Below are positions 19,749 through 43,537 of a DNA stretch of 64,000 bases, piece by piece. The notes under the pieces were generated by a model. It saw nothing but the letters and a program-made list of their open reading frames with translations. It was not told the DNA's origin and made no database searches. The position numbers and the translations under genes were made by a program. The stretch is from Trichosphaerium sp. ATCC 40318 (Eukaryota; Protista; Tubulinea): assembly GCA_038496445.1 (NCBI GenBank), contig JALMLS010000585.1:124001-188000 (forward strand), given 5' to 3'. Within the stretch, counting starts at the first letter, position 1; the number at the start of each line of letters is the position of its first letter.

Positions 19749-20400
19749 CAGGTCTAAAATTTTTGAGCTGTTTTTATGGTAGATACCATGAATTTGTGGT
19801 ATAATTATACCATTGATTACAATTTTATACCACAAATTCCAGTATAATATACCATAAATCAAAGACTTTATACCATGAAACAGCCAAATTATACCATAAA
19901 TATGCAGTAGAAAGTGCGAATTTATACCATATTTTTTCACCTGAAAAAATGCAATATATGGTATAATTCTACCATAAAACATGGTATAATACACAGTATA
20001 ATACCATAAAGCCTGGTATATTATACCACCAAGTACAGTATATGATACTATATAACTTGGTATTGTGTACCATAAACAGCAGTATCTTATACCACAAATC
20101 ACAGTATAGTATACTACATAACTTAGTATCTTGTACCATAAACAGTGGTATATTATACCATAAAACTTGGTACTTTGTACCACAAACAATGGTATACTAT
20201 ACCATGAAACTTGGTACTTTGTACCATAAACAATGGTATATTATACCATGAAACTTGGTACTGTATACCATAAAACTTGGTACTTTATACCATAAACAAT
20301 GGTATATTATACCATGAAACTTGGTATTGTATACCATAAATAACCAAAAAAACCAGTTTATTGTACTACAAAACACAGTATAAAATACCATAAATATCAA
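19749..20400. repeat. Left TIR plus subterminal array of TATACCA/TGGTA motifs in ~45-70 bp imperfect units
   Basis: Many copies of tataccat/ttggta, e.g. repeated tataccataaaacttggtactttgtaccataaacaatggtatat. Confidence 0.9.
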
Positions 20401-20419
20401 AAATCCCATACGATATTGT

Positions 20420-22627
20420 TTAAAACTCCAAATATTCACTCAAAGCTACATCTTCAATGGAATGAAGGCCTATTTGATTTTTAACTAATATTTTGTTAGA
20501 TAAAAAAAATGTAAGCAAACTTACAAGAGAGAAAATGCGTAGCTAATTTGTCAGCCTTGGAGTCATAGTGCAATTCCCGAAACAGTTGCAATAAAGCTTT
20601 TTTGCTCAAAGTTTTCTTATGATTTGCCTTTATTCTCGCCAAAACTATTGATTTATCATCCTACAAAACAATTAACACTTTGTCAAACTTTGTGAGAGCA
20701 CTTGTTTTTTTTCAATCAATGTGGCTTTTATCACGTATCTTGCCACCATCTCTGAGCTATCTCTACAACTTTCAATTGAACCTCCTAATACCTTACTTGT
20801 CGTCAAATCAATAGATGCCGGCACAACTTTTTTATAATTGGCGATGCTGGTTTCAAAGCCAAGTATTTCATCTACATTTGCACTTGGACCTAAAACATTT
20901 GAGATAAGGAAAAAAAAAAAACCCAATGTCTACTTACAGTACGTGTAAATGCTGTCAGAGCTTGCAACAATAGAAAACCAAGCACTAGAAAATAGTAAAG
21001 ACAATACACTGTAGCATAGTAAAAGAAAAGTACATGTTAGAGGTATAAAAGTCATCTTCTATGTCGCCGATTGAGTCAAAAACAATAAAATGATTTTCCG
21101 AATTCTTGTAAAAAGGAATCAAGGCAAACACAGAATGGTTCTTCAACTCAACATCCTAAAGATATTTAGCACAATACCTACCAATACATGTACCATTGAA
21201 GAAACAGCCGATAAGTCTTGCTTTAAACCAATCACCGTGACTTTGTGGTAGTAATCTTGAATTGTTAACAAAAAAAAAAAGGAGTGCAATGTACCTTTTT
21301 TTTTACTACCAAAAAAAAACCTGTTAGCTTCGTCAAATGCAATCCACACTGTACCTTGCTATCTTTGCCAAATTCATATAAGCATCCATTTGCTGTGCGT
21401 TTGGTGTACCATCTGAGGTAAACAACCATATAAAATCTTTAAACTTAAACTTGAGATCTCGCACTGAAACTACATCGTTTAACAATAGCCGCTCTTTCTT
21501 TTTTTTTTCTACAGGTGCTTTCTCATTCTCTTTTTCAAGACCTATATCGTGTCAAATGTGAATAAAAGCAAAGAAATCAGCTGTACCAGTAGTATTGGCA
21601 TCCACGTTCACAACAAGTTTGTCGACACTGTTATTACTTTGTTCACTTTCCTCGACACTTGACTTTGTAGTTTCTAATAAATTTATTATATCAGCTATAT
21701 CCATATCACCTTCTGAATCATCAATAAATGTGTCGCTACAACAGGCATGAGAGGAAAAAAAAAGAAGGAAAGAAGCACGTGAAAAATAAAAGCCGCACAT
21801 GTATTTGTAATGTCCATTTGTTGTAAAGTAATTGTGGCCAGTTTGTTGATATTTTCCATGCTTATTTTGTAAAGCATCCATTGTGAGCGTGTAGTATTCT
21901 GTAATCTGAACAATATTAAATCACAAATAAATAAGCAAAAAAAAAAAGGTAAATTTACTTTTCGTACCCATCCTTGTACCATTTCTTTTAAAGCCACAGT
22001 GATTGTAAAAGGAATCTTAAAATGAAACACTTTGTTTTGAAGTGCTAAATTAAAAATAGCAACTAATAACAGGTTAGGCACTGAACGCTAAGTTGATTAT
22101 GCTTTACATACTAACAGAAGCCTCTGAAATCTGTGGAATTTTGGATTTTATTTCTACCAAATACCTGCTCACATACGCTTTAAAAGTCCTTGTAGTTAGT
22201 AAATAGTCATTGTTAACTTGAGAGTAGTTCAAGTCGCATTTTGCAAATTTTGGGTTTGTTCTCCACGTGGTTTTAAATGCTTCCCATGTTTTTTTTTTAG
22301 CACTGGAACTAAGAGCTCCAGCCTCTAAATAAAGTCTTTGAGCAATAACACCAGCTTCCGACTATTGCATTATTAGTGTGGTTTTTAATACAAAAACAAG
22401 TGGTAGCGCACGTTTGTAGTGGCAATCTCCGGCTTGGATTGATTTGTGGTCATGCCAACATTTTGCTTTATTGTCTTCACCTCCTGTTCTAAGGCTCGAA
22501 TGTGATGTGCAAGCTTTCTAAACTGTAATTAACAACTGGTAGAATAATAACAAAAAAAACCATACTGAACCAGTGCTTTCAAATTTTCCTCGTTCATTTG
22601 CTTCTTTGATGGCGGCTCAGCAGACAT
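20420..22627 (-). CDS. Transposon-encoded protein of unknown function (possible accessory/TnpA-like), multi-exon
   Basis: ATG at 22627 (MSAEPPSKKQ, NLS-like), several GT-AG introns, final exon CLHSIEDVALSEYLEF* at 20420. Lies immediately downstream of the transposase. Confidence 0.55.
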
Positions 22628-22692
22628 GGCGTGCTTACAAAGTTGTTAAAATTTACTAATTTAATTGACTACAATGATGAATACAGAGTTTT

Positions 22693-25600
22693 TTAGGAAG
22701 GAATGGCATAGTGATAGTAGTTAATGAGCTGCTCTCCATCGTCACTGGTTGTATATACTTGCGCTAGCTTGTACACATTTTTTAGTGGTACACATGCTAT
22801 TGTGTCAGCAAATTCAACGCTACAGCAAAGTCAGTGTTTCAAAAGCAAAGAGTGAAGGTTTTGCACGTCAATAGCTCGCTGTTGGCATCATATGGGTTGT
22901 TTGGGTTTTTTAAAATAAAGTACCTAAAATTACGTGAGTAAATTAGTTGTTGCACTACTACAAACAGCTCACTCTCCGAATACAAACACTTGATTATTGT
23001 CAGTGATGCTTTGATAGATGGCTTGAGTTTTAACATATATGCAGTCTTTTTTAGTTTCTCTCTTTGCCGGTCTCCATGATTTAAAAAGAGTTTCATTTGA
23101 GACAGACAGCTTCATTGTCAGATCTTCCATTGTTACAGAGTTATAAGAAACAAACGGTTCTGACATAAGTCTCCTAGTATCAGCAGGGAATGTAGCCTCA
23201 AATGCTAATTTTTCCATGTGGCATAACTCTCTAACACACCTTTTGTTGCCTAAAAACAAAGTGAGATGTAATTTTTTTTATTTGCATTGCTTACGTAAAA
23301 TCCAGAGTGCCTTTTGTCTTTTGTAAAATGGAGGAGTGATCACTTTCCTTGACAATTCAACGTTATCTTTGTATTGATTGTGTAGCACAGAAGTGCAAAG
23401 GGCATCAAACTTGCCAATATATGATAACATTAACCATGGTATTTCTTTGTCTACTATGTCCCTATGCTTTGTTGGTGTATGTTGAAACAAAACATTTTGT
23501 ATACTTTATTTTGTCATGGTTCTTCGATGACAGCTTCCATTTTTTGATGGTGGCATGCTTAGATTCACATGCATAAGTGCTAATAATGTACAGTTAATCA
23601 CAACCATGTTAAAAGTGTACCTAAAGTGTTTAAAAACTCCAAATCGTTTAATCATGTATTCATAATGGTAAGGCACGTGAAAGTTTGTTGTGTCTAAATT
23701 TAACTCTAATAAGTTGTCAATGATCAGACACATACAAAAAAAGTAAATTGCAAACAGTACCAGGTAAATTAAGCTTTATTTCATTCAATAAGTTTTTGTA
23801 TTTGATTGTTACACTTTTGACTTGACGTTCTGACATAAAATCTCTTTGTGTCAATACTACAAAAGCCAACAAGTGTTTCCTTTAAAATTGGTCAATAAAA
23901 AGACAACACAAAGAGCTTTGAGAGGTACCACATTGACATGAGGTCATCAGGTAAAATGTGGCGAAAAACCAGAGCAGACATTTTCAAAAAGGTCCTCATG
24001 TCTGTTCCGTCCCAACTCTCAGATACTAAACATCCTGTATTATTCCACACTGCCTTCATTCTAAAATGACTTTGAATCAATACATCAAGTCAACAACATG
24101 TACATACTTTCCTAACCCTGTATTTTGTTTTCTAACATACTTGATCCTACGATTTAGAGTTTTTTTAAAAGTTTCTTTGGGTTGAAGCTCTTGCATTTTA
24201 GCCAATGCCGCATCCAACACATTTTTAGCTATACCCAATATGATGTTATGAAATGGACAATATGGAGAATCCAAAAAAAAGTCAAAGTGATAGTTCAGCA
24301 GTTTACTGAACGGAGACTAAAAAAAAAAAAAATACCAGTTAATCTAAAGTAAAACTAAATTCGTGGTTTGTTGCTCACCTGCCTGTGAATGCTAAAACAA
24401 TCTTTAATGTGATCACTGTATGAGTGTTCATGTGCCATGGTGAGGATTTGGTGTGTGTTTCTTGTGGCTGTTACAATCTCATTGTCTTCTGTAATTAATT
24501 GAAAGGCATTTTTTGGCACTCTACATATTCGGCAAGGATAATGAGATGTTGGACTCCTCATTGCTAAAAGTAACATAAATTGATCAATAATGAAGGATTT
24601 TTGTACATATCAATCTATTTGAGCCTGGTGAATCACCCAATATCTTAGACAACCTCAAATACACTGTGAAGTACTATTTTTGGATTAAATTGTAAAAAAA
24701 AAACCAATAAAATTGGCACGTACCTTTTGTTCACTTTTTATGTAACATCTCATGCCATTGTACACCTTTAAAAAATCATTTACAACATGCTCCAATAGAT
24801 CTTCTTCATGCAAACACTTTGGTAACACAGCCAACAACATTTTTCCAGTAGCACTGGCACTGTTAGGTAAATTCCAAACAACCATATACAAAGGCCCCAA
24901 ACTGTCTTTTTTATCGTATGTAAAATCATCCTTGCTTATATATGCTATTGATTAACAGTGAGTAGACAATCAAAAGATAAGTATAGTGTACCTGGGAGTA
25001 AAATAGTGTTGTCTTTGTCTGCCTCATAAACATCAAGTACATCTGCAAACACTTTTTTCACATTGGTTCCAGTTTCTGGACCTTTGTATACCTTCTCTGC
25101 TTTCGTAGTTCCATCTTCATAGTGCGTGTGCATTGTGGCTGGTCCATCAGTTATACATTCAGTGATGCTTTTTCTTGTGGGCAAATAATACAACACTCTT
25201 TTGATATGCTCTGATGGAGAGTAAAAAGGAACTTGTGTCGTGTATACAACTTTGTCTGACTTGGTTTTCTTGTCCACTGATATTATTTCAGGTGGGAATT
25301 GAGGCAAAAACTAGTATAAAACAATAAGCAAGGACAAAGGCATATACGTCTGATAAATGTACTTTTGTAGCAATTTCTTTCAACAATGTGTTTACAGAAA
25401 CAGACACAGTGCCTAACAAAGCCAACATAAGAGATAATCACAACGTGGTGTGTTACATACCATTAGCGTCAAGTCCAAAAAGAACCAAGGCAGTATTGAA
25501 CAGCTCTAAAATTTTTTTACACAAAACCAAAGACAGTTTGTGTTCCAACTTTAGCGCAAACAACAAATAACCAAGCTTTTGTTGAGGAGAGGCAGAGTTA

Positions 25601-26085
25601 AAGTCATCACTTGGCTCAAAATCTGGAGGCTTTTGTTCTTTTTTCCATTGCTCATCAGACAACTGTTCGAATTCTTTAACAAACAAATTAAATGCTACAC
25701 TAATTGTTACAGTTAACTCACCACTGCGCATAGCCTCACCATCAACACTTAAAAAGTGTGGAAGAGTTGTACATGGTAGCTCCGTATTGTCATCTCTTCT
25801 TAAATATATTGGTTCCACAAACTCGTCACTGACACTGCTTTCATTGCTCTCATCACCGGTGCCATTGAATCCACTGTCCGCACTACTTTCAGAGTCACTA
25901 CTGTGACTTATTGCATTGCTATTGGCATCACAATCTGTATCATATAGATTAAAAGCAAGCAGGTGGTCGACACTTTCACTGGCATTTGCTGAATCTCCCA
26001 AATTAATATCATGAGTTCTAATCCGTTTCTTTGCTTTGCTAATGTTATTGTTTCTTTGAGAAAAGTCTCTACCTCGTTTGCCCAT
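22693..26085 (-). CDS. CMC/EnSpm-Plavaka-type DDE transposase, multi-exon
   Basis: Spliced motifs: AYISKDDF...LGPLYMVVWNLP (first D ~24928), ILGDSP (second D ~24632), PCRIC (C2C), CPFHNIILGIAK, FHVPYHY (H3H), FSTYACESKH (E ~23564). This motif order is characteristic of the CMC supergroup. Confidence 0.88.
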
Positions 26086-26352
26086 TCCTATAATTAACTA
26101 AGTACATTTGAGGTATTTTGTACATGTACCTAGCTTTATGGTCGCCGCTGTATGTTTATTAGATTTTAAGTGTCTGTAATGATAATGTCTCCATGTATAC
26201 CATGTCTTACAAGCGTCACAATACACGTTAGCCATTGTTGCTTGTTGTTAATTACAATTAAGAAAAAAAACTCCACTTAATGAGCATAAATTTATTTATT
26301 GTTTCCTACACAATTTATCTAAACCTATGAACAATTTAGACGTTTAATACTT

Positions 26353-29190
26353 TTACAACCAACGTACAGTCACATTTTCGCTTGTCTTCTTTGGATAGCT
26401 TTCCTGTGTAGGCAAAACGATTTACTAGTGTTGGTAATACTGTAGTAAAAGAAACATTAGAAAAAAAGTTGCAAAAAAAATGATACCATTTAATTGTTTG
26501 ATCGTGTTCCAATGACAGCTTTCTTTACTTATTATTTCTCCATCAGACATCTTTTTGGTAGAAGGTTCATCACTGAAGATGTCCAAGAATAACGGACGCT
26601 GTTTGCAACACTTACAGTTAAGGAGAAGAGAGAGGTTATTTTCTAGACGTTTGATAGTTCTAAAAACCACAACCGGCTGATTACCATAATAAAGAAAGCC
26701 ATGAACATACCACCTTGACACAATGCCAAGTTGTCGGCTGCCTATGATACAATGTTAATAGAATGGAAACCTATGTCACGTTCTTACAACCAAGTGTATT
26801 ATAGGCAACATCAGCCTGATGTTTTAATAAAGTGCAAGGAGTTATAAAAAAAGTGCAGCCTTTATCTTCACTGTCATTTTCTCGCTGTAACTGTAGTGAC
26901 TTTTTAATAAGCTCTTTAACTCTATCTTGAGATATTTCAGTTGCAGTAGAATATACAACTGCCCACTCGCCTGAAAAATATCTGCAAATAAAATTAATGT
27001 AACATAACTGAAAAGAATCTTGACGTACTCTTTGGCAACACATTCTTTTTTAACCACCACTTTTAAACCTACTCCTGTATGTCCTTGAAAGGTTTTTTGA
27101 TAAGAAGCAATCAAACCCATTTCATACAAACTTGAAGAGATATTAAAACAACTTTGTGATTATTAATAAAAACGCACCCAGGTAGATTGTAAATTAAAAG
27201 AGTTCCAGGGTGTATAATTGTTTCTTTATCGTCGTCTTGTGGTAGTTTATACGGAGAGGATAAAAGGAAATGGTTGTTGGCTTTGTATCGTTGATTGCTT
27301 GGACACACAAATAAAGAGTGTTTCATTAATGTGTGCGTGGCATAAGATTTTGAAGATAATCCTACCAAACGCTTTTGTTTTGTGATAGCAAGATCAGTTA
27401 TTTTGGGCAGTTTTCGAATAAACTGTCTGACTATCAAAGAAAAATAACGAACTCCTTTAGGGACCATAACTTCAACAGAATGTCGCACAACTCCTGGACC
27501 AAATCCGTCACCATCATCTTGTACACCAGTTGCCAACTCAATGTTGCTTAAAGCCCACACAAAATTAGTCCCGCTGACTTTAAGCTTTCCACCATCTAAA
27601 TAAATACATTAATCTCTTATAAAATAGGTTGTATTTGACGTGCTTGTTTGTATGATGATGTTTTTGATAGGTTTTTTTCCTCCGTCCTTCAAAGCAAAGC
27701 CAAAACACGTTATACCAGTGCGGCTATGTAATTGTCCTTTGTCTCCATCTGTGTGCATTCTTAGGCCTGATTTACCCGTAGGCCACTCCTATAAATAGTT
27801 ATATTTAACCGTTGTACACGATATACGTTAAACCCACCTTTAACTCTATAACCATGTCTGCTATTTCACTTTCATTTAGTGCCTTTGCGTTGGTTGTAAT
27901 TTTGTGATGGGCATCTATAATAGGCAGCAATTGATCCCACTTAGCTTTATCCAGTTGAATGGGTATTTTAATCTCAGAGTTTCCACAAAACTTATCTTTA
28001 TGGTTTGTGTCAATCACGATACCAACCAAGTAAGTTACTTACCGGAATATGGTGTCACACAAACCACTTTACCATAATTTTGAGTTTTATATCTTCTCAT
28101 AATGTTTGCTTCCCACAAATCACCGGGCTTAGACCAAAACTAACAAAGTAAAAATGTTGGTTCTGACGATGGTTACGTACAGTGTGTTTGAGATCATTTT
28201 TTGACTTCTCAGCAAACTTTCTGCACACAATAAGCAATTCATCCGGCAAAGTGTATGTTGTAAGCCACAATTTTGACACAGATCCTTGCCAATCGATATT
28301 CAGCTTTGTAGAATTGGAAACATTTGTGACTACAACATCTTCAGTGTCTTCATCAGTTTTTTTATTATTGTCTTGTAGAATAAATTAGAAGACAAACATT
28401 TTATATTTGTTCAACTCGTACCTTTTTTAAAGTGGTTTACAGTAGGCATTTCATCGCATTTAAGGTAATTAAAGGCCATGACTACATCTTGTGGCATAAT
28501 ACTTGGTTGTAAAGTGCCATAAGGAACAACAGAACGCCTTTTTTTCGCTGTTGCAACAATAAGTTGTTGGTTGTTGATGTTAATGTACCTTGTTGTCTTT
28601 TTTTTCGTACTTTCAAAGCCATACGTACCAAGGCAGCACTAGATATATTATGCTTCTCTCCTTTACGTTTTATCTGTATTGGAAAAAAATGAGAAATGTC
28701 TAATACTAAGAAACCGTACCTTATTAAGCTCTTTGTATGTGTTTGCCGTTGGAGATCTTACATTTGCTGGCAAAACGCTTTGCACTATCCACTTTGTATG
28801 TGTCTTAGACATTAGCGTCGCATGTAAATTACATTCTTTAGCCCACGGCTCCTCCAATATTGTTCCTCCTCCATTTTCCACTGTAAGTTCTAACAGACTT
28901 TTGAGACCAATAACAGCGTCTTTTATCTTCTCTCTTTGCAGCTTAAGTTCATCGTGTTCATTTGCATTTGGTGTCTAGGAGAGTAATTAAGATTTGAGCG
29001 TTACACAATGAAACAATTGTACCTTACAGCTTATGTCATTCACATGGCATGTTACCTTCAAGTCCTGTATACGTGGTTTTTTTGACGTTGCTTTGGAGGA
29101 GTTGGATAAACTTCGCTTTCTACGCTGTGGTTTAGTCACAATAAAAAAAACCCTCTGTATACCTCTTAGATGTATTTCGTGCGGACAACA
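26353..29190 (-). CDS. Transposon-encoded protein containing a putative 2-oxoglutarate/Fe(II) dioxygenase domain, multi-exon
   Basis: Spliced ELKEWPTGKSGLRMHTD (HxD at 27747-27755) ... VVRHSV (distal His ~27480) ... VRYFSLIVR. The model requires one GC-AG intron (donor GCACGT at ~27643). The start codon is uncertain. Confidence 0.6.
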
Positions 29191-29939
29191 TAAGCTAAGC
29201 GTTGTTACCTACTCAGCTGTTAAGTCTAAATAAAGCAAATTTAAAAACGCGCGGCAATGCAGGAAAAATCAAAAAAAACCAAATAATTTGAAAAAAAAAT
29301 ATCAGAGATAACGCGAATGGCTAAAATCTCTTTTTTTTAGGTGGAGTGTACATTTAAGTACTTTTTGGAACTATTCAAAAAAAAAAAAATAATATTGGGA
29401 GAGTTTTTGCGCTAAGGCCTCGCAATGGTCCTGACTACGCGCAAAAACCACATTGGCGCCAAGTCACTTGCGGGCAAAATTGAACAAAAACCTCCAGTTG
29501 GAGGAAAATTGCACACACAAAAAAACTCTTAGAACTTGAGTTAAAAGGCCTACATAACCATAATGCGTACCTTTACCTTCTTTGGTTTATAATTTACCGA
29601 GTAACGCTAATGAGATTTTAGATGGTATTCATCAAATAAAACTGGTTGCACGTACCTCAAGCTGTGTTCAGCTGTATTTGCGTTAAGGAAGATTTTCTAC
29701 CACTTTCTTAACGCAACTAAAGGATCCCCAAAGGTACGCTATCACGTTATTAAGTACTTGGGATATTATACGCCCGCGCTACGGAATAATCAGTAAATAT
29801 ATATATTTTAACGAAATGTCTTTAAAACTAACGCTAAACTACCTTACGTACGTGCAGGGCTATTTTACACAGGTGCGCAACTCTAAAGCGTGTCTGGACA
29901 AATAATTATAACTTACGCTCATTAGGTAACGTCGTCAAG

Positions 29940-30220
29940 TGGTTAAGCCCAATATTTCCCCACGTTCTGGTTCTCCAAGAAGCAAACTATCGCAGTCACC
30001 ACGAAAGAAGCACTATTCAGCAACTAGGTGAACTGTACAGGTGCAGATATTCGTTTGAAGCGTCCAAACGGTTCGGGCGCGTCGGGTCCCCTGACATCGT
30101 CACAGTGCGTTAAAAGCGATAGTAAGCCAACTATCAATAGCTTACAAATTTAGGCATGCAAGCGCAGAAGTTCAAAATGGCAGGTGCTCTACAATTGACA
30201 ATGGAAGCTTGGGTACGCAT
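29940..30220 (+). pseudogene. Captured fragment of the neighbouring ROCO gene (copy of 15227-15508, inverted in the window)
   Basis: By-eye alignment: 8 substitutions and one 1-bp deletion over ~280 bp. Confidence 0.95.
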
Positions 30221-30792
30221 ATTTACACTTGCTGATAAAGCCGTGTGGCGTATAGTGTAGTTAATCTACTATTTGCTTCCTGCTTTCCAATTGATCGCCA
30301 CATTCTCACTGTACTTCTACTTAGACTCTACCAATGCGTGTGAGATATTTGGCGACTAGTAATTCAAACAAAACACCAACACGGCCAGAAGACTTTACAG
30401 AAGTACTCAAGCGCACTTATGGCGCTTCTACACACGGAAAAAGCAGCGATATAAAAAACAAAGAAAAGTATGCAGTAAAACGCTCTCGAAGAGATCCTCT
30501 AGGCAAGGCATTGGCATGGCAAGGTACTGTCGAGTGTAATTGTATTTTATCACGCTAAAAAACCGCTGTTACACTCAGCGTAGTGAAATTAATGCTTACA
30601 GCAATCGTTTTGCACGTTTGTCATACTGACAATAGCTAAACCGCTCTAGGTACTGACACGACAATCCTTGTTGGCTCTCCTCACCTTCAATTCCTGATAC
30701 CAGATGATGTATTGCTACCAAAGTCACTAGATCGCTTTGGAAAGTTTGTATTCAAGGTAACTACCGAATTCGAGAAAAAAACCCCTTTACAC
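30221..30792 (+). other. 572-bp unrelated segment inserted in the captured ROCO copy and flanked by a TACGCAT duplication; contains exon-like pieces
   Basis: TACGCAT at 30214-30220 and 30793-30799. The ROCO copy resumes at the same source position after the insert. Confidence 0.75.
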
Positions 30793-31273
30793 TACGCATT
30801 TTTTTGTACTATTTATTATTACTGTGATACTAGTTACTGCGTAGAACGCAATTTTTGGAATAGCATGCACAATTTTTTTTATGTCTGCGTTACTTGCTGG
30901 TGGTGATTTACGAGCATAATAATCCAGATTCAACAGTTTTTTTTTTAAAACCTCATCATTGGTCATCGTCTTTTTGTAAATTTCCATTTAACTTGTGCAC
31001 AGCGATACTGGACCGAACCTGAACGCTAGCTTACCTAATCTACCTGTTGGTACTCGTGCATCTCAGTCATTACCAAAGAAGAGCAAGAGAAACAGCTTGC
31101 GCAAGCGTCGATTTACTAAACGGAGTCTTCATGGCATTTTTAAAGATGTATGCTTTATCTTATTGTGTTTGAAAAGTATTTTTATCGAGTATTAATAGGG
31201 TCCTCCATCACCTCACACTGATATTAAATTCGCAAGGTGTAGGATAAACGAGATTATTGTACGTTTTGACCAA
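30793..31273 (+). pseudogene. Second captured ROCO fragment (copy of 14550-15233 lacking a ~218-bp block)
   Basis: Near-identical ORFs 30995-31195(+) and 14628-14828(-); intronic sequence is retained. Confidence 0.95.
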
Positions 31274-31289
31274 ATATCTTTCTTAGTAG

Positions 31290-32345
31290 ACATTGACTGA
31301 TATTGGTCCAAATCGTATGGCAGTGTATGCAAAGCTATTTACTCACCAGTTCCATTTGGTATGTCTGTTCATCCGTCAAAAGAGAAATTTCACTTTTTTT
31401 TGCATTTTTTTTTTGATTTGGTTTCCTCGTTTGCTTACGTCTTTCCAACACCAGTGCTGAGCAGATTTCTATCTCTCTTGATGGTAAACAGTTTGCATTG
31501 ACCGTTGAGGATGCTTCTTCAAGTGCTCAAGCTTGGACAACTGGTTGGGATATCTACACTGTAAACGTTGGCGATAATGGTCCTGAAGATCCAATATTAA
31601 TTGCAGGGTATTTACTAATACTTGTAGCTGTTTTTTCTAACGTGCTTCTTCCCTAAGATACACCTCTGCAAGAACACAAAACCCTGCATACGCTCCATCT
31701 TCAAAGTGGCTTGCTTACGGGTTTATCAACGATGGGTTTTTTGTTTCTCTAAGAATGAAGTCTTGGCCTTACACTCATTTTTAGTGCTATGATAAGACCC
31801 GGTTATGAAGCTGATCAACTCTATGTTGTTCTATATGATGAAGTAAAGAACGTTACTTCAATGCTACCTCTGGTAATAGTGTTTGAAAAAAAAACCGTTT
31901 TTAACAGCAAACGTTATTTGTTCTGTAGTTCGTCCTCACTCGGAGTATATGGGCGTCTCCAAAGAAGTATTCCACTTGAAGACCTATATTGATAAATGCA
32001 TTCACAAGATTAAGACAAGTATATAACAATGGGAAACACCTATGCTCGTAGTTCAAGGTGGACATGATTTCAGAGTACACCAATCATAAAGCAAACAAAA
32101 AAACCCCCAAACTAACGCTTTTGATAATAGGTACACATAGGTCAAGGTATTGGTACAGTTACAGCTTTACAATGTCAAGGTATGAATCAAAACTTTTGTT
32201 CCTCAAGGTAAGTATAGTCCCTTACATAACATGTGAATACACGTGTTGTTCAACAGCGTTCTTACTCTTTTTGTTAAGATAGGAAGTCATTGGGTTTTGC
32301 AACTGTATAACGGTATTGAATGGTACTTTGAAGTTCTTGCTAGGA
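31290..32345 (+). pseudogene. Captured, internally deleted S9C dipeptidyl-peptidase-5/acylaminoacyl-peptidase fragment
   Basis: AWTTGWDIY, PAYAPSSKWLAY and AMIRPGYEAD (propeller part) are joined to WETPMLVVQG, QGIGTVTALQ and HWVLQLYNGIEWYFEVL (catalytic C-terminus). Stops and frameshifts are present; introns are retained. Confidence 0.75.
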
Positions 32346-32856
32346 AGACAAGTACACCTCAAGTACTACATACAGTAGGCGTATTTTCGTTCATGCATTA
32401 TGCTTACAGCTTGAAATTTTTCTGGTAAGCCTTAAACAGCGTATATACGCCATAATAATACTATAAAAGGTCACCAGTGGTAGGTTCCGTATACTTTGAA
32501 TCATTTGGTACGTTTTCAGTAAAAAAAACCCTATGTGGCGTTTGGCACTTCTAACAGTGTACCTTCAAGGCCGATGTAAATCATGGGTCGTACCTTTAGG
32601 TTTTTTTGTGGCATTTTTAATGAGGTACCTCTGTTTTTTTGCTGTACAAAGTTTCAACATCACTACCTTTGCTTTAGTACTGTGGTACTGTTTTGAATAC
32701 TCTGGTATGTGAGTATTGTTAACCTTTTAATTTAGTTGAAGAAAACGGCCCTGCACCTACAGAAGCGGTACGGATCTCTTTCAATGGGTTATATCCACTA
32801 GCTTGAGAAGTTCCGAATTATTAATGTGTGTCTCTCTTTTTTTTTTTCGTGTAAAG

Positions 32857-33335
32857 GTTTGGCGTAGATTGTACTTTGCAGTATTGAGTGGTAACGTTGA
32901 ATCAGTTAAAGTGGTTTTATTGCAAGGTGTTGATATCAATGGCAAGATAAGGATGTATGTAGCTTCAACAGTGATGAGAAATCGCACCAATTACTTTTTT
33001 ACTTTTTTGGTTTGGTTCTTTGTAATAATTTTTGCTAACGGTTGATAATGTAGGGTGACTGTATTGTGCACTTGGTGTGTCAAAAGCAACATTTGGTGCG
33101 AATTACTACTTGTAATTTTTGAGATTATTCAAGCTGTAGATACCATTACAGCGTTTACACACTTGAGTTTATAGTACTGACAACTTACCCCTCTGTTTAG
33201 ATTATAGTCAATGAATTACTAGTGTATGGTGCTACAGATGTTCTCGATAATACGGTAAGCGTAGATTAAGATAGTGTAGACGCATAGTGCTTATTTTTGG
33301 TTTAGGGCATGTCGTCATTGCACGTTGCTACCTCA
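32857..33335 (+). pseudogene. Captured ankyrin-repeat gene fragment
   Basis: LYFAVLSGNVESVKVVLLQGVDIN, IVNELLVYGA and GMSSLHVA, separated by GT-AG introns. Confidence 0.65.
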
Positions 33336-33659
33336 TGAGAGACCTGCACCTCCACCAGCGTGTGCTTCCTCAGCTGACGACTAGAAGAAGCAAAACATGT
33401 TCCCAAAGTAGAAGCAAACTCCTGTAGTTGATAGCGGTTTTCAACTGCAAAGAGCATCGACGCCTCCACCAAAGCCTAGTCAAAGCGTACATAGATATAC
33501 CTATTAAGAAGGGTGTTCGTAGAGATGTACCATTACATCACAAGCATGACGTGTTCATACTACATCTTCTTGTACGTATCAATTTCACTTCATGATTATG
33601 AACTCACTTTTAAAATACAGCAAGCGGTTTACCAGCATTACCAGTTTTGTAGAACGTCA

Positions 33660-34590
33660 TGGCTCCAACCACAAAAGCGCCAACTACAGAAACTCCAACT
33701 ATGAAGGCTCCTACCTCTGTAGCACCTACTACAGAGGCACCAACAACAGAGGTCCTACCACTGTAACGCCTACTACAAATGCACCAACTACAGAAGCTCC
33801 AACAACAGATGCACCTACTACTGAAGCACCAACCACAAACGCTCCACAACAGATGCTTCAACCACAGATGCGCCAACTACTGAAGCGCCAACGATTGAGG
33901 CACCTACTACTGAGGCACCTACCACTGAGGCTCTTACAACTGTAGCACCTACTACTGAAGCGCCTACTATGGAGGTTCTCACGACCGAGGCTCCAACTAC
34001 AGGAGCTCCTACGACTGAAGCTCCTACCACAGATGCGCCAACAACTGAGGCTCCTACCACTGTAACGCCTATTACAAATGCACCAACTACAAATGCTCCA
34101 ACAACAGAAGCCCCAACAACTGAAGCACTACAACTGTAGCGCCAACAACTGGTACTTTGTATTTTACTTTTTAAAGCAACTAACTTTCTTTGTAGATGCA
34201 CCAACTACAGAGCTCCAACAACAGATGCACCTACTACTGAAGCACCAACAACTGAAGCTCCTACCACTGAAGCTCCGACAACTACAACACCAACTACAGA
34301 GGTCCAACCACACAGAAGCTCTGACGACTACGACACCAACTACAGAGGCTCCTACAACGAAAGCGCCAACTACTGAAGCCCAAGTACTTACGCTCCATCT
34401 ACTGCTCCAACAACAGAGGCTCCAACTACTGCGCTTACTACTGAGGCACCAACAACTGAACTCCAACTACAGATGCGCCTACAACCAAAGCTCCAATGAC
34501 AGAAGCACCAACTACAAAGGCTCCAACCACAGAAGCGCCAACTACAGAGGCTCCTACGACTGATGCTCCAACAACAGACTACACCAAGTG
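33660..34590 (+). repeat. Degenerate 15-bp coding tandem repeat encoding (APTTE)n mucin-like sequence, frameshifted
   Basis: Repeated GCNCCNACNACNGAR units with indels, and an intron at ~34152-34195. Confidence 0.9.
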
Positions 34591-34705
34591 ATCGCTGCCT
34601 TTTACTCGTGGAAATTCTGCTTTGTTTTCTCTGGTGACTTACTTTATTTTTTTTACTCATTGCTACTCTTTACTGACATTGTGTCCTAACATCTGCTTGT
34701 TTTAG

Positions 34706-34892
34706 GTTGGAACCTTGTGCTGGCGGTGCTGTATACTTACTTGCACTCACAGATTTAATTTTCATGGTAGAAGGTACACGTGGTTTATAAAAAACTGAAC
34801 AACATTTCTTGATTTATGTGACAGTTTTTCTTACTCTGGTGTTTTTTCTAGATACATCATACATGTTCATCACAGGGCCAGAGGTTGTAAAC
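34706..34892 (+). pseudogene. PCCB: Captured two-exon fragment of a propionyl-CoA carboxylase beta-chain (carboxyltransferase) gene
   Basis: PCAGGAVYLLALTDLIFMVE / DTSYMFITGPEVV matches the conserved GPCAGGAVYSPALTDF.FMV..TSY.FITGP.VV; the intron is retained. Confidence 0.8.
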
Positions 34893-35064
34893 ACCAACAT
34901 TGCACCGCTGTCTTGTCAATAAATAACATTACAAAAAACTCGTTGTTTTTAACTCTTTTGACTGTGAGTTTTTAGTTTTCACTGTTTACCATCAGAAACA
35001 CCCGCTTTAGGTATGTATTGTTGTTTTAAAGTCTTTTAAGTCTTTTAACTTATTATTTTATTGT

Positions 35065-35258
35065 TTTTACTTATAATCGCCCAAATAACAATAAACCTAG
35101 GTATCCGCTCAGTTTTATAGCGCTTTAAGCCGTTTAGGCCATTTAACTCTTTATTTTAGGTATTTTACTTGTAAACGCCCAAACAACAACAATTCTAGGT
35201 ACATGCTCAGTTTTATAGTGTTTTAAGCCATTCAAGACATTTAACTCTTTATTTTAGA
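35065..35258 (+). repeat. Two-copy ~98-bp tandem duplication, each unit containing a GT...AG intron-like segment
   Basis: cgcccaaa...ctaggta...gctcagttttatag...catttaactctttattttag occurs twice. Confidence 0.75.
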
Positions 35259-35282
35259 TTATTGGCTTGTAGAACGTCAAAA

Positions 35283-37182
35283 ATGAATAGAAAAATGCAA
35301 GCAATAGTGCTCGCAGCAGGTACATATTACATAATAACTTGTAATGACATTTGTCATTAACACATTTTATAGCTTCTACAAATGAAATTGAACCTTTCAC
35401 ACGCTCTGATTTGAGGCATCACAGTACTGTTTTGTGTAATTACTTTGGCAAGCACTTGCAGACTGTGACTAGCATCAATTCTGGCTTCATTCACGTTCAT
35501 GTCATATCTACGGGACAATTCCGTCAAAAGTACTTTAGCAATTTTGGTGTGGTTTTCACTGTTAACATCTTCTAGTACTTATGAAGATGCTCTACCTATT
35601 GATAATCCTATAGATGCACTACTGCAGTTTCATAAATCTCGTGATGCTGTGTGTACTGTTGCTGGAAGAGAAATTCGTGGTTCAAGAAAAATATATTCTG
35701 ACTTTTATCAATTTAGCAATGACAAACACTCACGTGTTGTTGATGCTGTTGTCATGGATGCTGAACTTACTTTACCTGAAATAGTACGGTTTTTTTTGTT
35801 TGTAAGCCACCATATCAACTTATAAATGTAGATGACGAGAAGTAAAATTGTGAGAATAGTAATTCTTAAAGTCAATCTTACTGAATCATGGTGTCTTTTT
35901 GATCTTTTGTCACAAACACCATTATATCCTCCACCTCTCAGTGCGTGTATGTGTATCAGTTAATAGTTTAATGAATCAATAGGTTTGTGGTATACTATTG
36001 GCAAGGTAATAGAGAAGGCAGCTATGTCAAAACATGGTAGTTCAATGTACGTTATTGATAAATATAAATACAAACTATCACCTTTTGTGTTACTAACACT
36101 TGTATAGAGATGATGCCCAAAAGAAACTATTGACTACAATTGTAACTGAGCCTTATCAACCAAAATTGTTGATGATTCCTGGCGAGATCTTCGAGAAGAT
36201 TCGTGGTTTTTGTGACATTGAATTTGATCATTGTTTTTCATTGGTGTGTTCATATTTTTTGGCTCCATTGTTTATTAAACACCACGGCTGTTGGGTCAAA
36301 CATGGAGTGTGGATAAAAAATAATGAGGAAAAAACCAAAGAAATACGAGCTATCTTTGACTATGGACGGTGTATCAAAGTATTATTGAACGTAAGAGTTG
36401 GTGTAAAGTTATACAAGTACGAAATTTTTGTTTGTGGTTTTACAGTTTAACAATTACTTGCTTTATATAGAGATGTCTTTCACTTCAGTGTAGAAGGTCA
36501 GTTTTTGAAAGGAACAAGAAAAATAGTCACTGAAGATAAAGAAGAAGTTGTCACTGTCAGATTTACTACCAACGCTGCCACTTACGAGATTGAAAATTCT
36601 TTTTATTTTCAAGATACACTTTATACTTCTAAAACAACCTATGCTTTGGCCAACAAAAAATTGTTGTTAGTTTCTGTAACAGCTATTGTTGGCTACAAAC
36701 TCTTTCCAGTGATGGCCATTGACTTTCAAGATGAAGATCACCTTGAGTTTTACGACAAGAAAACAAAAGATATTTTATTTGAAATATCCAATGAGCAGCT
36801 TTTTGATTATGTGGATAACACTAAAGAAGGTACCAAGATAACTACATTAACCATTTGTCTTTAATTTTATTGTTTAGATCTCAATATGGATGAATTTGGT
36901 TGTCAGCAGCTTTGTACTGTTTGTGAGCTTCACCAAGCCACTCATCAGTTGTGGCCTTTTGTTTACGAATGGCTCAAATACAAAATAGATATGTTAATAC
37001 CCGATTGGTACTATCCAAATGTCCTTTACTGTCAGCCGCGCATCCATACTATGGCAGCACTGACAACTTTTGAACCTTTATTTGCTGTATCTAACTTTAC
37101 TGAATGGAATGAAGCGATGGATAGGTTCATACTAGTGGCATTAAGCTATGAACATCACATACGTTGTCATGTGTTTCAATAA
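35283..37182 (+). CDS. Transposon-borne multi-exon gene: degenerate nucleotidyltransferase-like N-terminus followed by an F-box-like motif and a beta-rich region
   Basis: MQAIVLAA and LLQFHKSRDAVCTV recall the NTP_transferase/eIF2B-gamma N-terminus; LLMIPGEIFEKI recalls an F-box start; long open exons. The domain calls are weak. Confidence 0.4.
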
Positions 37183-37289
37183 ATGCAATTCACGCTACTT
37201 CATGTAATTGTTTTTTTTTTATTTACATACTACAGTAAAGACCAAACACGACACAGTCATTGTAAAATATTTGACATCATAAAAATCCA

Positions 37290-37473
37290 TGAATATAGAT
37301 ACAGTATAAAACATGGTATATTAAGTCTTATACCATATGTCTAAAAATCACGGTACTATACCATAATTTGCAGTATAATTTTATGGTATAATTTGTGATT
37401 ATACCAAGGTAGTACCATAAACCACAATTATACTGCAAAATATGGTATTATACCATGATAATTTTCAGACCTG
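37290..37473. repeat. Right subterminal TATACCA/TGGTA array plus right TIR of the giant element
   Basis: Repeated atggtata/tatacca motifs ending in ttttcagacctg. Confidence 0.85.
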
Positions 37474-37987: not shown

Positions 37988-38344
37988 TGTCATATACACG
38001 TCTCACGTGATGACTTAGATGACTTAAGCTTACATATTCATGGCTTATTCGTTCTTTTGCTCTTTCTTTATTTGCTAAATCTAGGTTCCTGCAAATTAAC
38101 TAATCGTTCACATATTTGCTTCGTGATGTTTCGTGTAGACTATGAAAACCATTATCGATGTCTATAGTCTATTGGGATGTTATTATCACGAAACTTGTTC
38201 ACGAAGTAACTCGAAGTCTATTCAAGATGTTTCACACGCCACGAGATACACTCACTTACTAGAAACGCTCATCTAAGACATTGTAATACGTTCATGTAAT
38301 AAACAGATTTAACTAATTACACAAGCGTTACAACATCTCTTACA
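37988..38344 (+). repeat. 5' LTR
   Basis: Direct repeat of 46964-47320 with two C/T differences. Confidence 0.97.
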
Positions 38345-38356
38345 TTGGCGACACGA
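38345..38356 (+). promoter_or_regulatory. Primer-binding site (TGGCGAC..., possibly complementary to a tRNA-Ser 3' end)
   Basis: TTGGCGACACG immediately follows the 5' LTR. The tRNA identity is inferred, not checked. Confidence 0.65.
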
Positions 38357-41300
38357 TCATTATTTTTATACCTTTGCATCTCCTCCCGAGACTTCCTGTT
38401 TACACAAACTACTCACGCACTTTGCTTGGTGTGGGAGAACCTATATGTCATAACCGTAGCTTTGCCAAAATACTTGTGGGCTGGTAGAAAACGCCCTCCA
38501 TAACAGCTACGTCATTACTGCTTTACGTTCATCGTCTCTTTTGAAGTTTCTCTTTATCACACATTCACATTATGTCAGGCGTTCCGATTTCCGAATTGGA
38601 AAAACAGATCAAAGCTTTGGAAGCTGAAGTTAAAGAAGCTAAACGCAGAGAATCACGTACCTTTGCTACAACTGCATACACAGTCCCTTCTTCACATGTT
38701 ACACCTCGATCAGCGGATAGACGACAACGTCTCCAGACTACAACTCTGAAAGCTCCTCCGATGCCGAACCTAACACAATAACCTGTCGTTAAGATACAAA
38801 ATGCAGCGCTCAAAAAGGCACGCGAAGAACTCGGCGAACCTGAAGAAGATGCCACAGAAGATGAGAAAAAAGAACACGAAGAAGCTTTGGGAAAGAAAAC
38901 TCGCATTTATTTCACAATACAATTCCAGAAGGTATTCAGGCAGAAACAACTGGAATTAATACAATCCGAGAACTTTGAAGCCGTTTCTACCGATTTGGAT
39001 GCTCTTGTGGTTCTCGAAGATGAATATGGTGGCGATAGCAATGGCACCGAGCCTGTGCCTACACAACCGGCATTTATTCCGATGATGTCGAACCTCGAGC
39101 AAGATTTCACTCCTTTTTCTGGCACGAAGAAAGAGAACGTTCATATCTGGATTCAGAACGTACATACTCGATGTTCCAAGTTATTTATGCACGATTCCAT
39201 GCGAGTGGCTTTCATCGAAGACCATCTTATCGATCACGCGAAAGAATGGTATCAAGGACACATTCGAGGCAAAGAGGTCACTGCAGATGAGCTCCTCAAC
39301 GCTTTGAAAGAATTTTACAGCAGCTCTGGCGATGCTAGAAAATTTCGACAAGAATTCAAGCACTTCTATCAAGGAAACCTTTCCGTTCGAGAATACGCCG
39401 CTTCTAAATCCGCTAAAGCTGCTTATGCTCACCTTCCTCTAGATGGTTACTCACAGATCGAGTCTTTCACAGATAACCTCCGAGAAGATATACAGACGCA
39501 ACTTTATTGTCACACTGGCTCTGAGTTCGAGACTTGGAACGAAGCTGTCAAAGCCGCTATCCGTATTGAAGAAGCTCTCGAGCGTATTGGGCGTAACAAA
39601 AAGCGCATACAAAAGTCCAGAGGATCTACAAACTCTACAAATTCATCAAAACCGGCGAAGAATACAAAAACTGGTTCTGGTTCTACAAATTCTCCTCCTC
39701 GAATTCCACGCGACAAATGTCTGGACAAAACCAAGTGTCCAGATCCCAACAATGCCTCCGTCAACAAATGGTGTGATAACCATGGCTTCTGGTGTGCTCA
39801 TTCAACAGATCAATGCAGAAAGAGCGCCAAACAAAACTCCATCTCAGTCATTCCAACCGACAAAGAAGTAGAAGCTGCCCTCACAGAGAAGATTGTCAAA
39901 CCACGACGTCCGATGGATTATGATATACAAGCTGGGATGTCTAGATTCGATACGCCTCTCAGTCCGTATCACCCTCCCAACTTTGACTTGAGATCCGAAG
40001 CCGTTATCACTGAGATAATGCCTCCTGGTCAGAATTATGTGGAGATTCGACTCAATGGAACTCCAATAACAGCTTTGGTAGACACTGGCGCAGATAGATC
40101 GGTCATTCTTGCGTGTGCTCTCAATCTCATCAACCAACCCTACTCGCTAGAAGAAGCAAATGTAACCGGTACAGTTGCTAGTGGCGGTAAGGTTGAATTC
40201 AAAAACAAAACCTCTGCCCTTCAACTTTCTTTGGCTCCAAACATTGTCGTGAACACTTCTTTCCTAGTTTCAGATGAACTCAGCGACATTTGTATTCTTG
40301 GCAACGATATCTTGGGTAAACACAACATCGGCATATTCCCTCAACGCGGTATTCTATTGGTCAACGATCATCACGAAGTCCCTCTCATCAAGAAACCATA
40401 TGTTTCTAAGAAGCTTCTCAAACAGTCTATTCTCCGTGCTGAAGATGATGTGGTGATTAGTCCTCAAGAGACGGTTGTGTTGGCTCTAAAAACTGATGTT
40501 TGCCAAGGGCTCATTGGAGTTGCAAACCTCTCTAAACGCCTCGCTCATGAAGGACTGGCTGGAGCTTGTGTTTTAAACACTATCGATAAACGGAGAGCTT
40601 ATTTGCAAGCCACCAACTTATCGAAATGCTCCATCTACCTTCAGGCAGGTCAAAGAGTTGGGCTCTTCAAACCTCTTCGTGCAACTACACAGATTAGTTG
40701 CCTTTCGACTCATATCGGTCAGGTCTATTCAGATGCGTTTATGGAACCTGCCACCTCCTCTTTCGTACGTTCAGTTGATCCTAGTGACCCAGCTGTTTCT
40801 GCTAGCGATGAATCAGTTGTTAGTGAAGATTCCGAAGAAGCGTCAGTTTCTGAAAGTTCTAAGCTTAACTCTATGAAATCAGGAACAGTTAACTCTGACG
40901 TACCTACTTCTTCTGGAACATCTAGAGCTGGAGATAGCGATTCCAGTCTTCGTGTAGCAACAGAAGAAGAAAGAAAACATATCTTGGAACTATTCGATCT
41001 TTCTGATAGCTCATTGACAGCTGAGCAACTCCAACGTGCAACCAATCTCCTCGCCGCCTATTCCGACAGATTCGAAGAAGAGATTCAAGCTCCACGTTCA
41101 ACAGAAGTCAAACTGAGGATCGACACAGGCGACTCTAAACCAAAGGGTCAGCCTCCAAGAAGATTTCCACCCAAATATCGCGAATTCATCGAAGAATTCA
41201 TCCAGTCTTACAAACAGCGAGGTTTGATAAGACCTTCCACCTCTCCATGGGCTGCACCTATCGTGGTAGTCCCTAAATCAAATGGTAAGCTGCGATTCTG

Positions 41301-41513
41301 TATCGATTACAGACAGCTTAATGGTGTTACGAAGCGTGATGTCTATCCTTTACCAAGAATCGATGATGCTTTGGATGCATTATCAGGTTCTACCCTTTTC
41401 TCGACAATGGACGCTACGTCAGGATTCCATCAACTGGAGATGGATCAGGAATCAATCGAGAAAACTGCATTCATAGATCAAACTGGTCTCTATGAATGGC
41501 TAGTCATGCCGTT

Positions 41514-42095
41514 ATTGTAGGTAAAAGAGTGGCTCTTTGTACCTATTATATAAAATCAAAAACCAAACAACCAAAAAACCAATTAACCCAGCATTGTGTG
41601 ATCACAAGGTCAGTGTAATACAGTGTGTAATCACAGATGCCAACCTTGATACCAAATCAAGGTTGCCTAGGCTAGGTTTTACATTCTATAAACAAGCTGT
41701 GTGGTATTTGAATATAATGGTTGATCATACCTATTAAAATGGTTGTTTTTACCTATTAAAACGGTTGTTCTTACCTATTATTGAATCAATACAGACACAA
41801 CAACCGAAAACACAAGCCCAACAAAGAGCCATCACACATAAAGACAACACAGTGTACCATCACAGACGGACAACCTTGATACCAGATCAAGGTTGACCTA
41901 GGCTAGGTGCAACAAAACAAAGCAATCAAAAAAAAAAAACCAAAGTCAACAAGTAGTAAATGATTAACAGTGGTGCAACAAATGGTTGCTGGTCCCTATC
42001 CTGATTGACAGAAAAGAACTCAAACTTCAAGTGCAAACGGTATAAGCAACCGTGGTTCGTGTAGCCCATGTCCTGACACCATCATCCACAACTCT
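41514..42095. mobile_element. 582-bp TIR-less insertion in RT with a 3-bp GTT duplication and internal hairpins; class unknown
   Basis: Splits ATG CCG TTT GGA (MPFG); GTT at 41511-41513 and 42096-42098. Confidence 0.85.
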
Positions 42096-42477: not shown

Positions 42478-43537
42478 CAGGTCTAAAAAAATATACCAGT
42501 TTTTTTGGTATATACCACTTTTATACCACTTTTTTATACCAGTTTTTCATGGTATATACCAAAAAAAGTGGTATATTTTGACCGAAATATACCAAAAAAA
42601 GTGGTATATTGACCAAATATACCAACAATATACCAAAAAAAACAGGTATAAAAACAGAAAATATACCACTTTTTTTCACCAAAAAAAAAAAAATATACCA
42701 CTTTTTTATACCACTTTTTTTAGGTATATACCAGTTATATACCACTTTTTTATACCAGTTTTTCATGGTATATACCACTCTTATATACCACTTTATGTCT
42801 ACTTATGGTACACCTGCAATTCCAGAAAATACACTTTATTTAATACACAGTTTGTGAGTTACAAGTTTTGAACAATGTCCACTACAGTTACATTACTATG
42901 GGCGTCTGGAAAATTTGTCCATCTCCATGAGCTTGCTGTACCTACTGTAAAAACATGCTGCGCACCTAATGAAAGTGGTTTCACCTGAATCTATCAATTA
43001 CTAAGGCCTACGGAGGTCGGTTAATGTATATCAAACGAAAATAAAATAACACTTTGTCTGGTACCCACGAACGTCTGTATAATACCTGCAATATAGTTTC
43101 CTTAATGTTGGTACTGGAATCAGGTCCTGCGGTTCGAATGAGCTTGGTTTGGTTAGATTCTATGATATACTAAGGTCCCTACGCACCGTTCAATGTATGA
43201 CGTCTATGATCGTTCAACAAGAAAACCCATTACCAAAAAGCTCCTTAATGACCTTCTTGAAGCATACCATAAAAGTGGTATATACCAATAAAAAGGTGGT
43301 ATATACCACATACCATAAAAAAGTGGTATATACCACTTTATATACCATTTTTAGAAGGTCTCATTATGTGAATGAAAAGTGGTATATACCACTTCCATAT
43401 ACCACTTTTTTATTCACTTAATTTCTAAAAAAAGTGGTATATCAAAATGGTATATACCAGTTTATATACCATTTTGTTGAAAAAAGTGGTATATACCATA
43501 AAAAAACTGGTATATACCACTTTAATTTTTAGACCTG
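42478..43537. mobile_element. 1060-bp non-autonomous element (CAGGTCTAAAAA TIR, TATACCA subterminal arrays, AA TSD), related to the giant element
   Basis: Termini CAGGTCTAAAAA / TTTTTAGACCTG; AA duplicated at 42476-42477 and 43538-43539; splits PKLASK|AAPLR. Confidence 0.93.

Follow-up and report, generated by a model that had tools for sequence, protein, structure and literature searches.

How a train of host-gene fragments, all reading in one direction and still containing introns, came to lie inside a transposable element is the question raised by a 64,000-nucleotide stretch of DNA from Trichosphaerium sp. ATCC 40318 (contig JALMLS010000585.1, positions 124,001 to 188,000), hereafter the window, which lies on contig C26 of a 70-Mb eukaryotic genome; other contigs of the same genome are likewise given C-numbers. 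The fragments occupy window positions 29940-34894 within a DNA transposon with terminal inverted repeats (TIRs), the carrier, which as a whole (19749-37473, no strand assigned) measures 17,725 bp and whose ends coincide with the ends of its copies elsewhere. Our answer, which we hold with a probability of roughly 80%, is that a spacer in this element has been repeatedly broken and repaired by template-switching synthesis, the acquired pieces then being eroded and spread by the element.

A genome-wide DNA search with window positions 29300-35300, and then local BLAST against the loci that it retrieved, found sources elsewhere in the genome, 85-99% identical, for approximately 97% of 29940-34894, and since the E-values of these cargo-donor matches range from 1e-15 to 0, chance is excluded. 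Read from left to right, with every piece on the plus strand, the cargo opens with piece A of a Roco GTPase gene (29940-30224, equivalent to window 15508-15223 on the minus strand, 96.5%), which is common to the window copy and the copy on C445, with two shared derived changes. Nested in the Roco sequence is the youngest cargo, a piece of a TAGT-like gene (30211-30785; C200:70451-69877, 99.1%), followed by a 7-bp filler at 30786-30792, tttacac, identical to the beginning of that piece, and by Roco pieces B (30793-30883; window 15233-15143, minus strand, 99%) and C (30869-31273; window 14940-14550, minus strand, 94%), between which 203 bp of the donor have been lost at a 15-bp direct repeat. 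Then come a fragment of an S9 (DPP5-like) peptidase gene (31264-32370; C6:748041-750571, four pieces, 86-93%) with internal losses of 117, 238 and 1066 bp, the 117-bp one inside an exon; the 5' fragment of an acetyl-CoA transporter (Acatn) gene (32365-32623; C37:171772-171514, 90%); an ankyrin-RhoGEF fragment with in-frame stops (32680-33643; C93:21241-18864, three pieces, 85-93%); an (APTTE)n mucin-type minisatellite with a 15-bp period and 62 copies, its frame broken several times (33662-34578); and the oldest cargo, a fragment of the carboxyl transferase gene PCCB (34638-34894; C282:38000-38072 plus 38276-38464, 86-88%). An initial annotation, made by reading the sequence, had listed five donors, namely ROCO, S9/DPP5, ankyrin, mucin and PCCB; all five stand, but the count rises to seven with the genes on C200 and C37, and the ROCO pieces, correctly recognized (94-99% identity to window 15508-14550), are interrupted by the C200 piece of another gene.

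The left border of the cargo is less sharp than these coordinates imply. An older small piece resembling C183:64966-65056 is seen in the copies on C351 and C445 at a place corresponding to window 29870-29939 (plus strand), these coordinates being taken from the alignment of copies, as the window's own 29870-29939 gave no match to C183. In C351 the match extends 13 bp beyond the 29939 junction. The cargo zone therefore begins somewhat to the left of 29940, and a site-specific break at 29939, which we had considered, is ruled out because this older piece crosses the point. Towards the other end, no single donor can be named for the mucin repeat, because it has dozens of matches of approximately 70% across the genome. 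A host open reading frame (ORF) to the left of the element (17520-17993, minus strand) also contains a mucin-like stretch, PTEAPTEAP, on the strand opposite to the cargo APTTE, and there is no close DNA match between the two. The pieces carry stops, frameshifts and deletions heedless of exon/intron borders and, judged by these lesions, are decaying pseudo-exons without function. Pfam gave a single weak match on them (Carboxyl_trans, E 5e-4), and because the pieces are too short or too decayed for Pfam, their identity rests on DNA homology to the donors; an exact-protein look-up of one cargo ORF in public assemblies returned no record.

The six donors that could be located look, from their sequence, like intact, intron-rich genes, with exon-sized open frames running along one strand and Pfam domains on that same strand (Peptidase_S9 on C6, Carboxyl_trans on C282, Ank and RhoGEF on C93, and Acatn on C37). 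The Roco donor stretch (14550-15508, minus strand) lies in the window itself, 4.2 kb outside the left end of the element, and that gene has a Roc-domain match (window 11212-11493, minus strand) which, with an E-value of 4.9e-5, stays below the Pfam cut-off. The host gene on C200 is single-copy in the genome; its segment C200:69204-69734 (equivalent to L024:3705-4235, minus strand) matches the TET-associated glycosyltransferase family PF20691 (E 2.5e-5, also below the cut-off), and the 99% cargo piece corresponds to the upstream part of the gene. Introns were retained in the cargo, as the S9 exon aligns to its donor together with both flanking introns and the PCCB piece as exon-intron-exon. Changes of CpG to TpG or CpA were counted 52 times in the cargo and 9 times in the donors, and the cargo is therefore the derived copy; this one-sided CpG decay suggests that the element is methylated at CpG. 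With the donors located, the introns kept and the CpG decay polarised, the earlier claim that intact host genes had been captured at the DNA level is supported.

It could be argued that the train is an assembly artefact joining unrelated reads, the more so as the sister copies lie on short contigs ending in repeat and the assembler struggled with the carrier family. We consider this highly improbable. The pieces have diverged from their sources by 1-15%, and this decay is CpG-biased. Junctions from the tail of C6 onwards, through C37 and C93 to PCCB, are found again in both C445 and C351; C380 repeats the junction inside PCCB, and C445 the one at the left end of Roco. Two of the three objections that the initial annotation had raised against itself, that donor loci might be lacking and that the region might be misassembled, thus fail, since the donors exist and the junctions recur in independent contigs.

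The history of the cargo is legible because the carrier has been mobile. In all long copies (C188, C470, C445, C351, C352 and C380) the element starts or stops exactly at the positions equivalent to 19749 and 37473, and at least 40 short copies, each approximately 2 kb, end at the same termini. By comparison of termini, the left TIR, CAGGTCTAAAAT... (19749-19761, plus strand), is followed by subterminal repeats that run to approximately 20400, and the right TIR is CAGGTCTGAAAAT (37461-37473, minus strand); the consensus, CAGGTCT[A/G]AAAAT, is inverted at the two ends. Arrays of GGTATA...TACCAT units are found at 19.8-20.4 kb and 37.29-37.46 kb. The target-site duplication (TSD) in the window is TA/TA, and a 2-bp TSD matched in 10 of the 12 copies examined, against a chance expectation of 1 in 16, the copies sitting in differing flanks at several loci. 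The backbones of C445 and C351 are 98-99% identical to that of the window copy, that of C470 is 95% identical, and those of the more distant long copies on C188, C380 and C352 are 89%, 87% and 85% identical, respectively.

Comparison of the cargo among these copies, a check proposed with the initial annotation, revealed that the cargo, placed at one and the same internal position, is partly nested and partly private. A PCCB piece with its internal junction, 38072 to 38276, unchanged occurs in the window copy, C445, C351 and C380, and a partial one in C352. The C93, C37 and C6 pieces are common to the window copy, C445 and C351, with shared derived substitutions and stop codons; the Roco piece is restricted to the window copy and C445; and the C200 piece, at 99.1%, is private to the window copy. 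Other pieces follow the same pattern: a piece of a PHD-finger gene (C2) occurs in C445, C380 and C352; the cargo that C351, C445, C352 and C380 between them have at this site also includes a piece of a Trx-like gene; C352 carries a 3-kb piece of C142; and C351 has a piece of a DRG GTPase gene (C15) that is split by sequence private to this copy, derived at 98% identity from C258 and an IMPACT-family gene (C52). The substitution identities to the donors (C200 99.1%, Roco 97.7%, C6 94.1%, C93 92.4%, C37 and PCCB 90.3%) form a gradient in the same order as the sharing of pieces among copies. Since every copy contains PCCB and the 98-99% pieces are each confined to one copy, capture was serial, as first proposed, and since the copies share junctions and derived substitutions in differing flanks, each shared piece is a single capture inherited by transposition. 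The copies also keep differing parts of one capture: that from C6 spans 747415-750571 across three copies, the sisters keeping parts from 747415 onward, that from the Roco gene spans 15508-13233 across two copies, and C445 and C351 retain approximately 270 bp more of the C93 donor. Erosion by deletion has therefore been as active as gain. In the same set of copies, C445:12457-23310 (L013, L014) is chimeric, with a left arm of the window type (98%) and a right end of the C352 type (96.5%), the switch falling inside the cargo/mucin zone, and C445 has two PCCB pieces.

The junctions, read base by base, carry the signature of the process. Runs of exact microhomology at nine junctions measure 10, 11, 5, 3, 3, 3, 1, 0 and 0 bp, with a mean of 4.0 bp against 0.74 bp expected from resampled junctions of the same genes, and none of 100,000 resamples reached the observed sum. 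At the switch from Roco to C200, 14 bp are common to the 5' splice sites of both genes; after the 7-bp filler, synthesis resumes on Roco at the same point, so that an 11-bp Roco duplication flanks the C200 piece. The remaining junctions share 10, 6, 3, 3, 1, 0 and 0 bp, or contain a 9-bp filler. Microhomology together with short templated fillers is what is looked for in template-switch insertions of the gap-filling or FoSTeS (fork stalling and template switching) kind, and both were found. Moreover, the Roco donor lies in cis, 4.2 kb from the element, which fits the cis bias and the gap-filling model of animal Pack-TIRs, for which gap-filling and FoSTeST models have been put forward (PMC8277862). 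BLAST of the fragments against the genome, also proposed at the outset, yielded both the six located donors and microhomology far above chance.

Two other routes by which the cargo might have been trapped are the joint movement of two neighbouring elements, established for Pack-CACTA elements of Arabidopsis by Catoni et al. (PMC6379663, PMC8903248), and the insertion of a nested Helitron or other element, given that Helitrons are able to stack co-oriented gene pieces (PMC3288121). Joint mobilisation is unsupported here, because no TIR remnants were found near 29.5-30 or 34.9 kb. As for a nested Helitron, which the initial annotation had named as its third possible refutation and whose TC/CTRR ends it had suggested seeking around the cargo, the cargo borders are caag|tggt and acac|caac and not TC...CTRR, and the carrier has TIRs and a TSD. 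In addition, at least seven contigs contributed donors, each piece varies between copies independently of the others, and the genome-wide DNA search did not find the cargo block outside the carrier family. We therefore give these routes very little credence.

Capture by template switching would have proceeded as follows. A mobile TIR transposon with genes on both arms would contain a dispensable spacer between them. Breaks in this spacer would be repaired by DNA synthesis that jumps to other templates at short matching sequences, each jump copying from a host gene, introns included, a stretch of between a few hundred and a few thousand bases (transduplication). Microhomology-mediated deletions would later trim the pieces, and transposition would spread each version, giving the nested and private cargo found among the copies. 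The initiating break may have been the excision of the element or a fork stalled at the minisatellite, the pathway thus being either gap repair after excision or the collapse of a stalled fork, in both cases presumably with template switching.

Several points weigh against this reading. The junctions between 30211 and 32030 are private to this contig and rest on one assembly, and the sister long copies are on short contigs whose ends fall within the element, which leaves each of them seen in part. For the mucin repeat, which may be an old part of the element, a donor could not be identified. Conserved coding exons are the only grounds for regarding the element as autonomous, its putative transposase having been matched by no search. 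Finally, plain template switching does not predict strict co-orientation of the pieces.

This co-orientation is pronounced. Across copies, all 11 donors whose coding strand is known read in the sense direction along the plus strand of the element (two-sided p ~0.001), as the initial annotation had claimed for the window copy when it described directional capture, and the cargo bay sits between the minus-strand genes of the left arm and the plus-strand ORFs of the right arm. The reason for the all-sense orientation we can only infer. Strand-biased microhomology, stemming from T-rich introns and splice-site motifs, was examined as a cause and rejected: k-mer sharing in the same relative to the opposite orientation is just 1.04-1.12, and an excess of only 4-12% cannot explain the co-orientation. 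That co-orientation is a real rule, arising either from capture coupled to donor transcription (through R-loops or nascent RNA) or from a transcribed exon-shuffling cassette that keeps sense pieces, seems to us doubtful.

The second of these routes, in a more general form, is possible, if far from probable. The bay would be transcribed, as an intron or the 5' region of the gene in the right arm, and selection would keep sense pieces only; these may serve as cassette exons, or antisense pieces may be lost because they would silence essential donors. Besides the 11 sense donors, the constrained plus-strand ORFs downstream (36100-37179) and the splice-site sequences kept in the pieces are consistent with such a unit, and the pieces in the soybean element Tgm-Express1 are spliced as cassette exons (PMC1947982). 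However, no plus-strand exon was found upstream of the bay, and the stops, frameshifts and deletions of the pieces take no account of exon borders. If the bay is transcribed in this manner, the train has been shaped by function and not by repair accidents alone. The other route, in which nascent unspliced RNA or R-loops at the donors guide the template switch and thereby fix the orientation, appears improbable. It would account for the orientation bias (p ~0.001) that strand-biased microhomology fails to explain, the donors with a recognisable gene were copied from within that gene, and the retained introns mean that only unspliced RNA fits; but DNA is the simpler template for fragments of at least 3 kb with every intron, the within-gene position of the donors has no baseline from the genic fraction of the genome, and the C258 donor has no clear gene. 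Should either mechanism prove true, the carrier family would be a natural system for studying directional gene-fragment capture. As an explanation of the train as a whole, repair of the spacer by template switching is the one we prefer.

The carrier proper consists of two arms. The left arm holds coding exons for a putative transposase and other element proteins (20600-28900, minus strand), whose ORFs remain open across subfamilies with substitutions enriched at third codon positions, and the right arm (34908-37473, plus strand) holds ORFs at 36100-37179 that are likewise kept open, with changes depleted at second codon positions. Open ORFs and the codon-position bias of the changes argue that these frames are coding, and by the same measure the exons at 20600-28900 (minus strand) and 36100-37179 (plus strand) are under purifying selection between subfamilies. 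Between subfamilies, the right arm (35388-37473) is approximately 96% identical, against just 85-88% for the left arms, an excess that indicates either stronger constraint on the right arm or its recent exchange.

The element proteins, searched one exon at a time, look like orphans in Pfam, in the ESM Atlas and, for one exon, among 1.84 billion proteins. Neither arm had an exon-sized ORF with a usable Pfam match, exon-wise scans of 26.4-28.9 kb showing no 2OG dioxygenase, and the ESM Atlas gave no usable match either; a conserved 120-amino-acid exon searched with HMMER against the 1.84 billion proteins retrieved one spurious bacterial repeat protein and no true relative; and the PF02992 (Transposase_21) profile, searched genome-wide, did not match the element. 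The subterminal repeat arrays are those of the CACTA/EnSpm (CMC) superfamily, but the termini start with CAGGTCT and not with CACTA or CACTG, and the TSD is of 2 bp and not of 3 bp. The Mirage branch of CMC has a TSD of 2 bp. With regard to Pack-type (transduplicating) TIR elements, the carrier shares with them the TIRs, the TSD, the presence at several loci and internal DNA from extant host genes, but they are non-autonomous and have no coding capacity of their own, and here ORFs are conserved on both arms. The label Pack-CACTA, which the initial annotation had mentioned beside Pack-MULE and Helitron elements, is not demonstrated here, given the CAGG start of the TIR, the 2-bp TSD, the lack of a Transposase_21 match and the length and protein-coding content of the element. 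The carrier is, by its sequence, long and protein-coding, and its family is unplaced.

The capture of gene fragments by DNA transposons is itself a known phenomenon, documented mainly in plants and lately in animals. The closest described case is Tgm-Express1, a 5.7-kb non-autonomous CACTA element of soybean that carries fragments of five unrelated host genes, with splicing of the pieces demonstrated (PMC1947982). Both are TIR elements with exon-plus-intron pieces of several unlinked genes, readable in one direction, but the present carrier is 17.7 kb long, has coding exons in both arms, a 2-bp TSD and a CAGG terminus, and is known from sequence. The Pack-TIRs of animals resemble it in breakpoint microhomology, donors often close by in cis, internal breakpoints and spread by transposition; they are mostly short elements with single fragments, whereas here many pieces are stacked in one bay in strict co-orientation (PMC8277862). 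In maize Helitrons, related copies also differ by added gene pieces, which reflects sequential capture, although these elements lack TIRs and TSDs and move by rolling-circle replication (PMC3288121), unlike a carrier with TIRs and a 2-bp TSD. Pack-CACTA and Pack-TYPE elements of Arabidopsis and other plants are comparable in that a TIR family mobilises and shuffles captured chromosomal DNA (PMC6379663, PMC8903248), but the mechanism proposed for them is the joint movement of two neighbouring elements, and no internal TIR remnants were found here. A search of a literature library found no report of gene-fragment capture by DNA transposons in Amoebozoa or other protists. New in this case are the lineage, the long protein-coding carrier and the layered, strictly co-oriented pattern of the cargo.

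What makes the locus valuable is that its record is unusually readable, with layers of different age, sister copies whose cargo is nested, a donor just 4 kb away, microhomology at the junctions and a strict orientation rule that repair models as they stand do not predict. It also holds a warning for the annotation of this genome, as sequences resembling exons of Roco, S9 peptidase, PCCB and other genes are, within such elements, pseudo-exons and not paralogues. Two further mobile sequences lie near the carrier in the window. Directly to its right, an open frame of 877 amino acids (38887-41520, plus strand) probably belongs to a retrotransposon of the Ty3/Gypsy type, in which gag, protease and the start of the reverse transcriptase were recognised by reading the translation alone, and a second element of approximately 1 kb (42478-43537) bears the terminal motif of the carrier, CAGGTCTAAAAA, at both ends.

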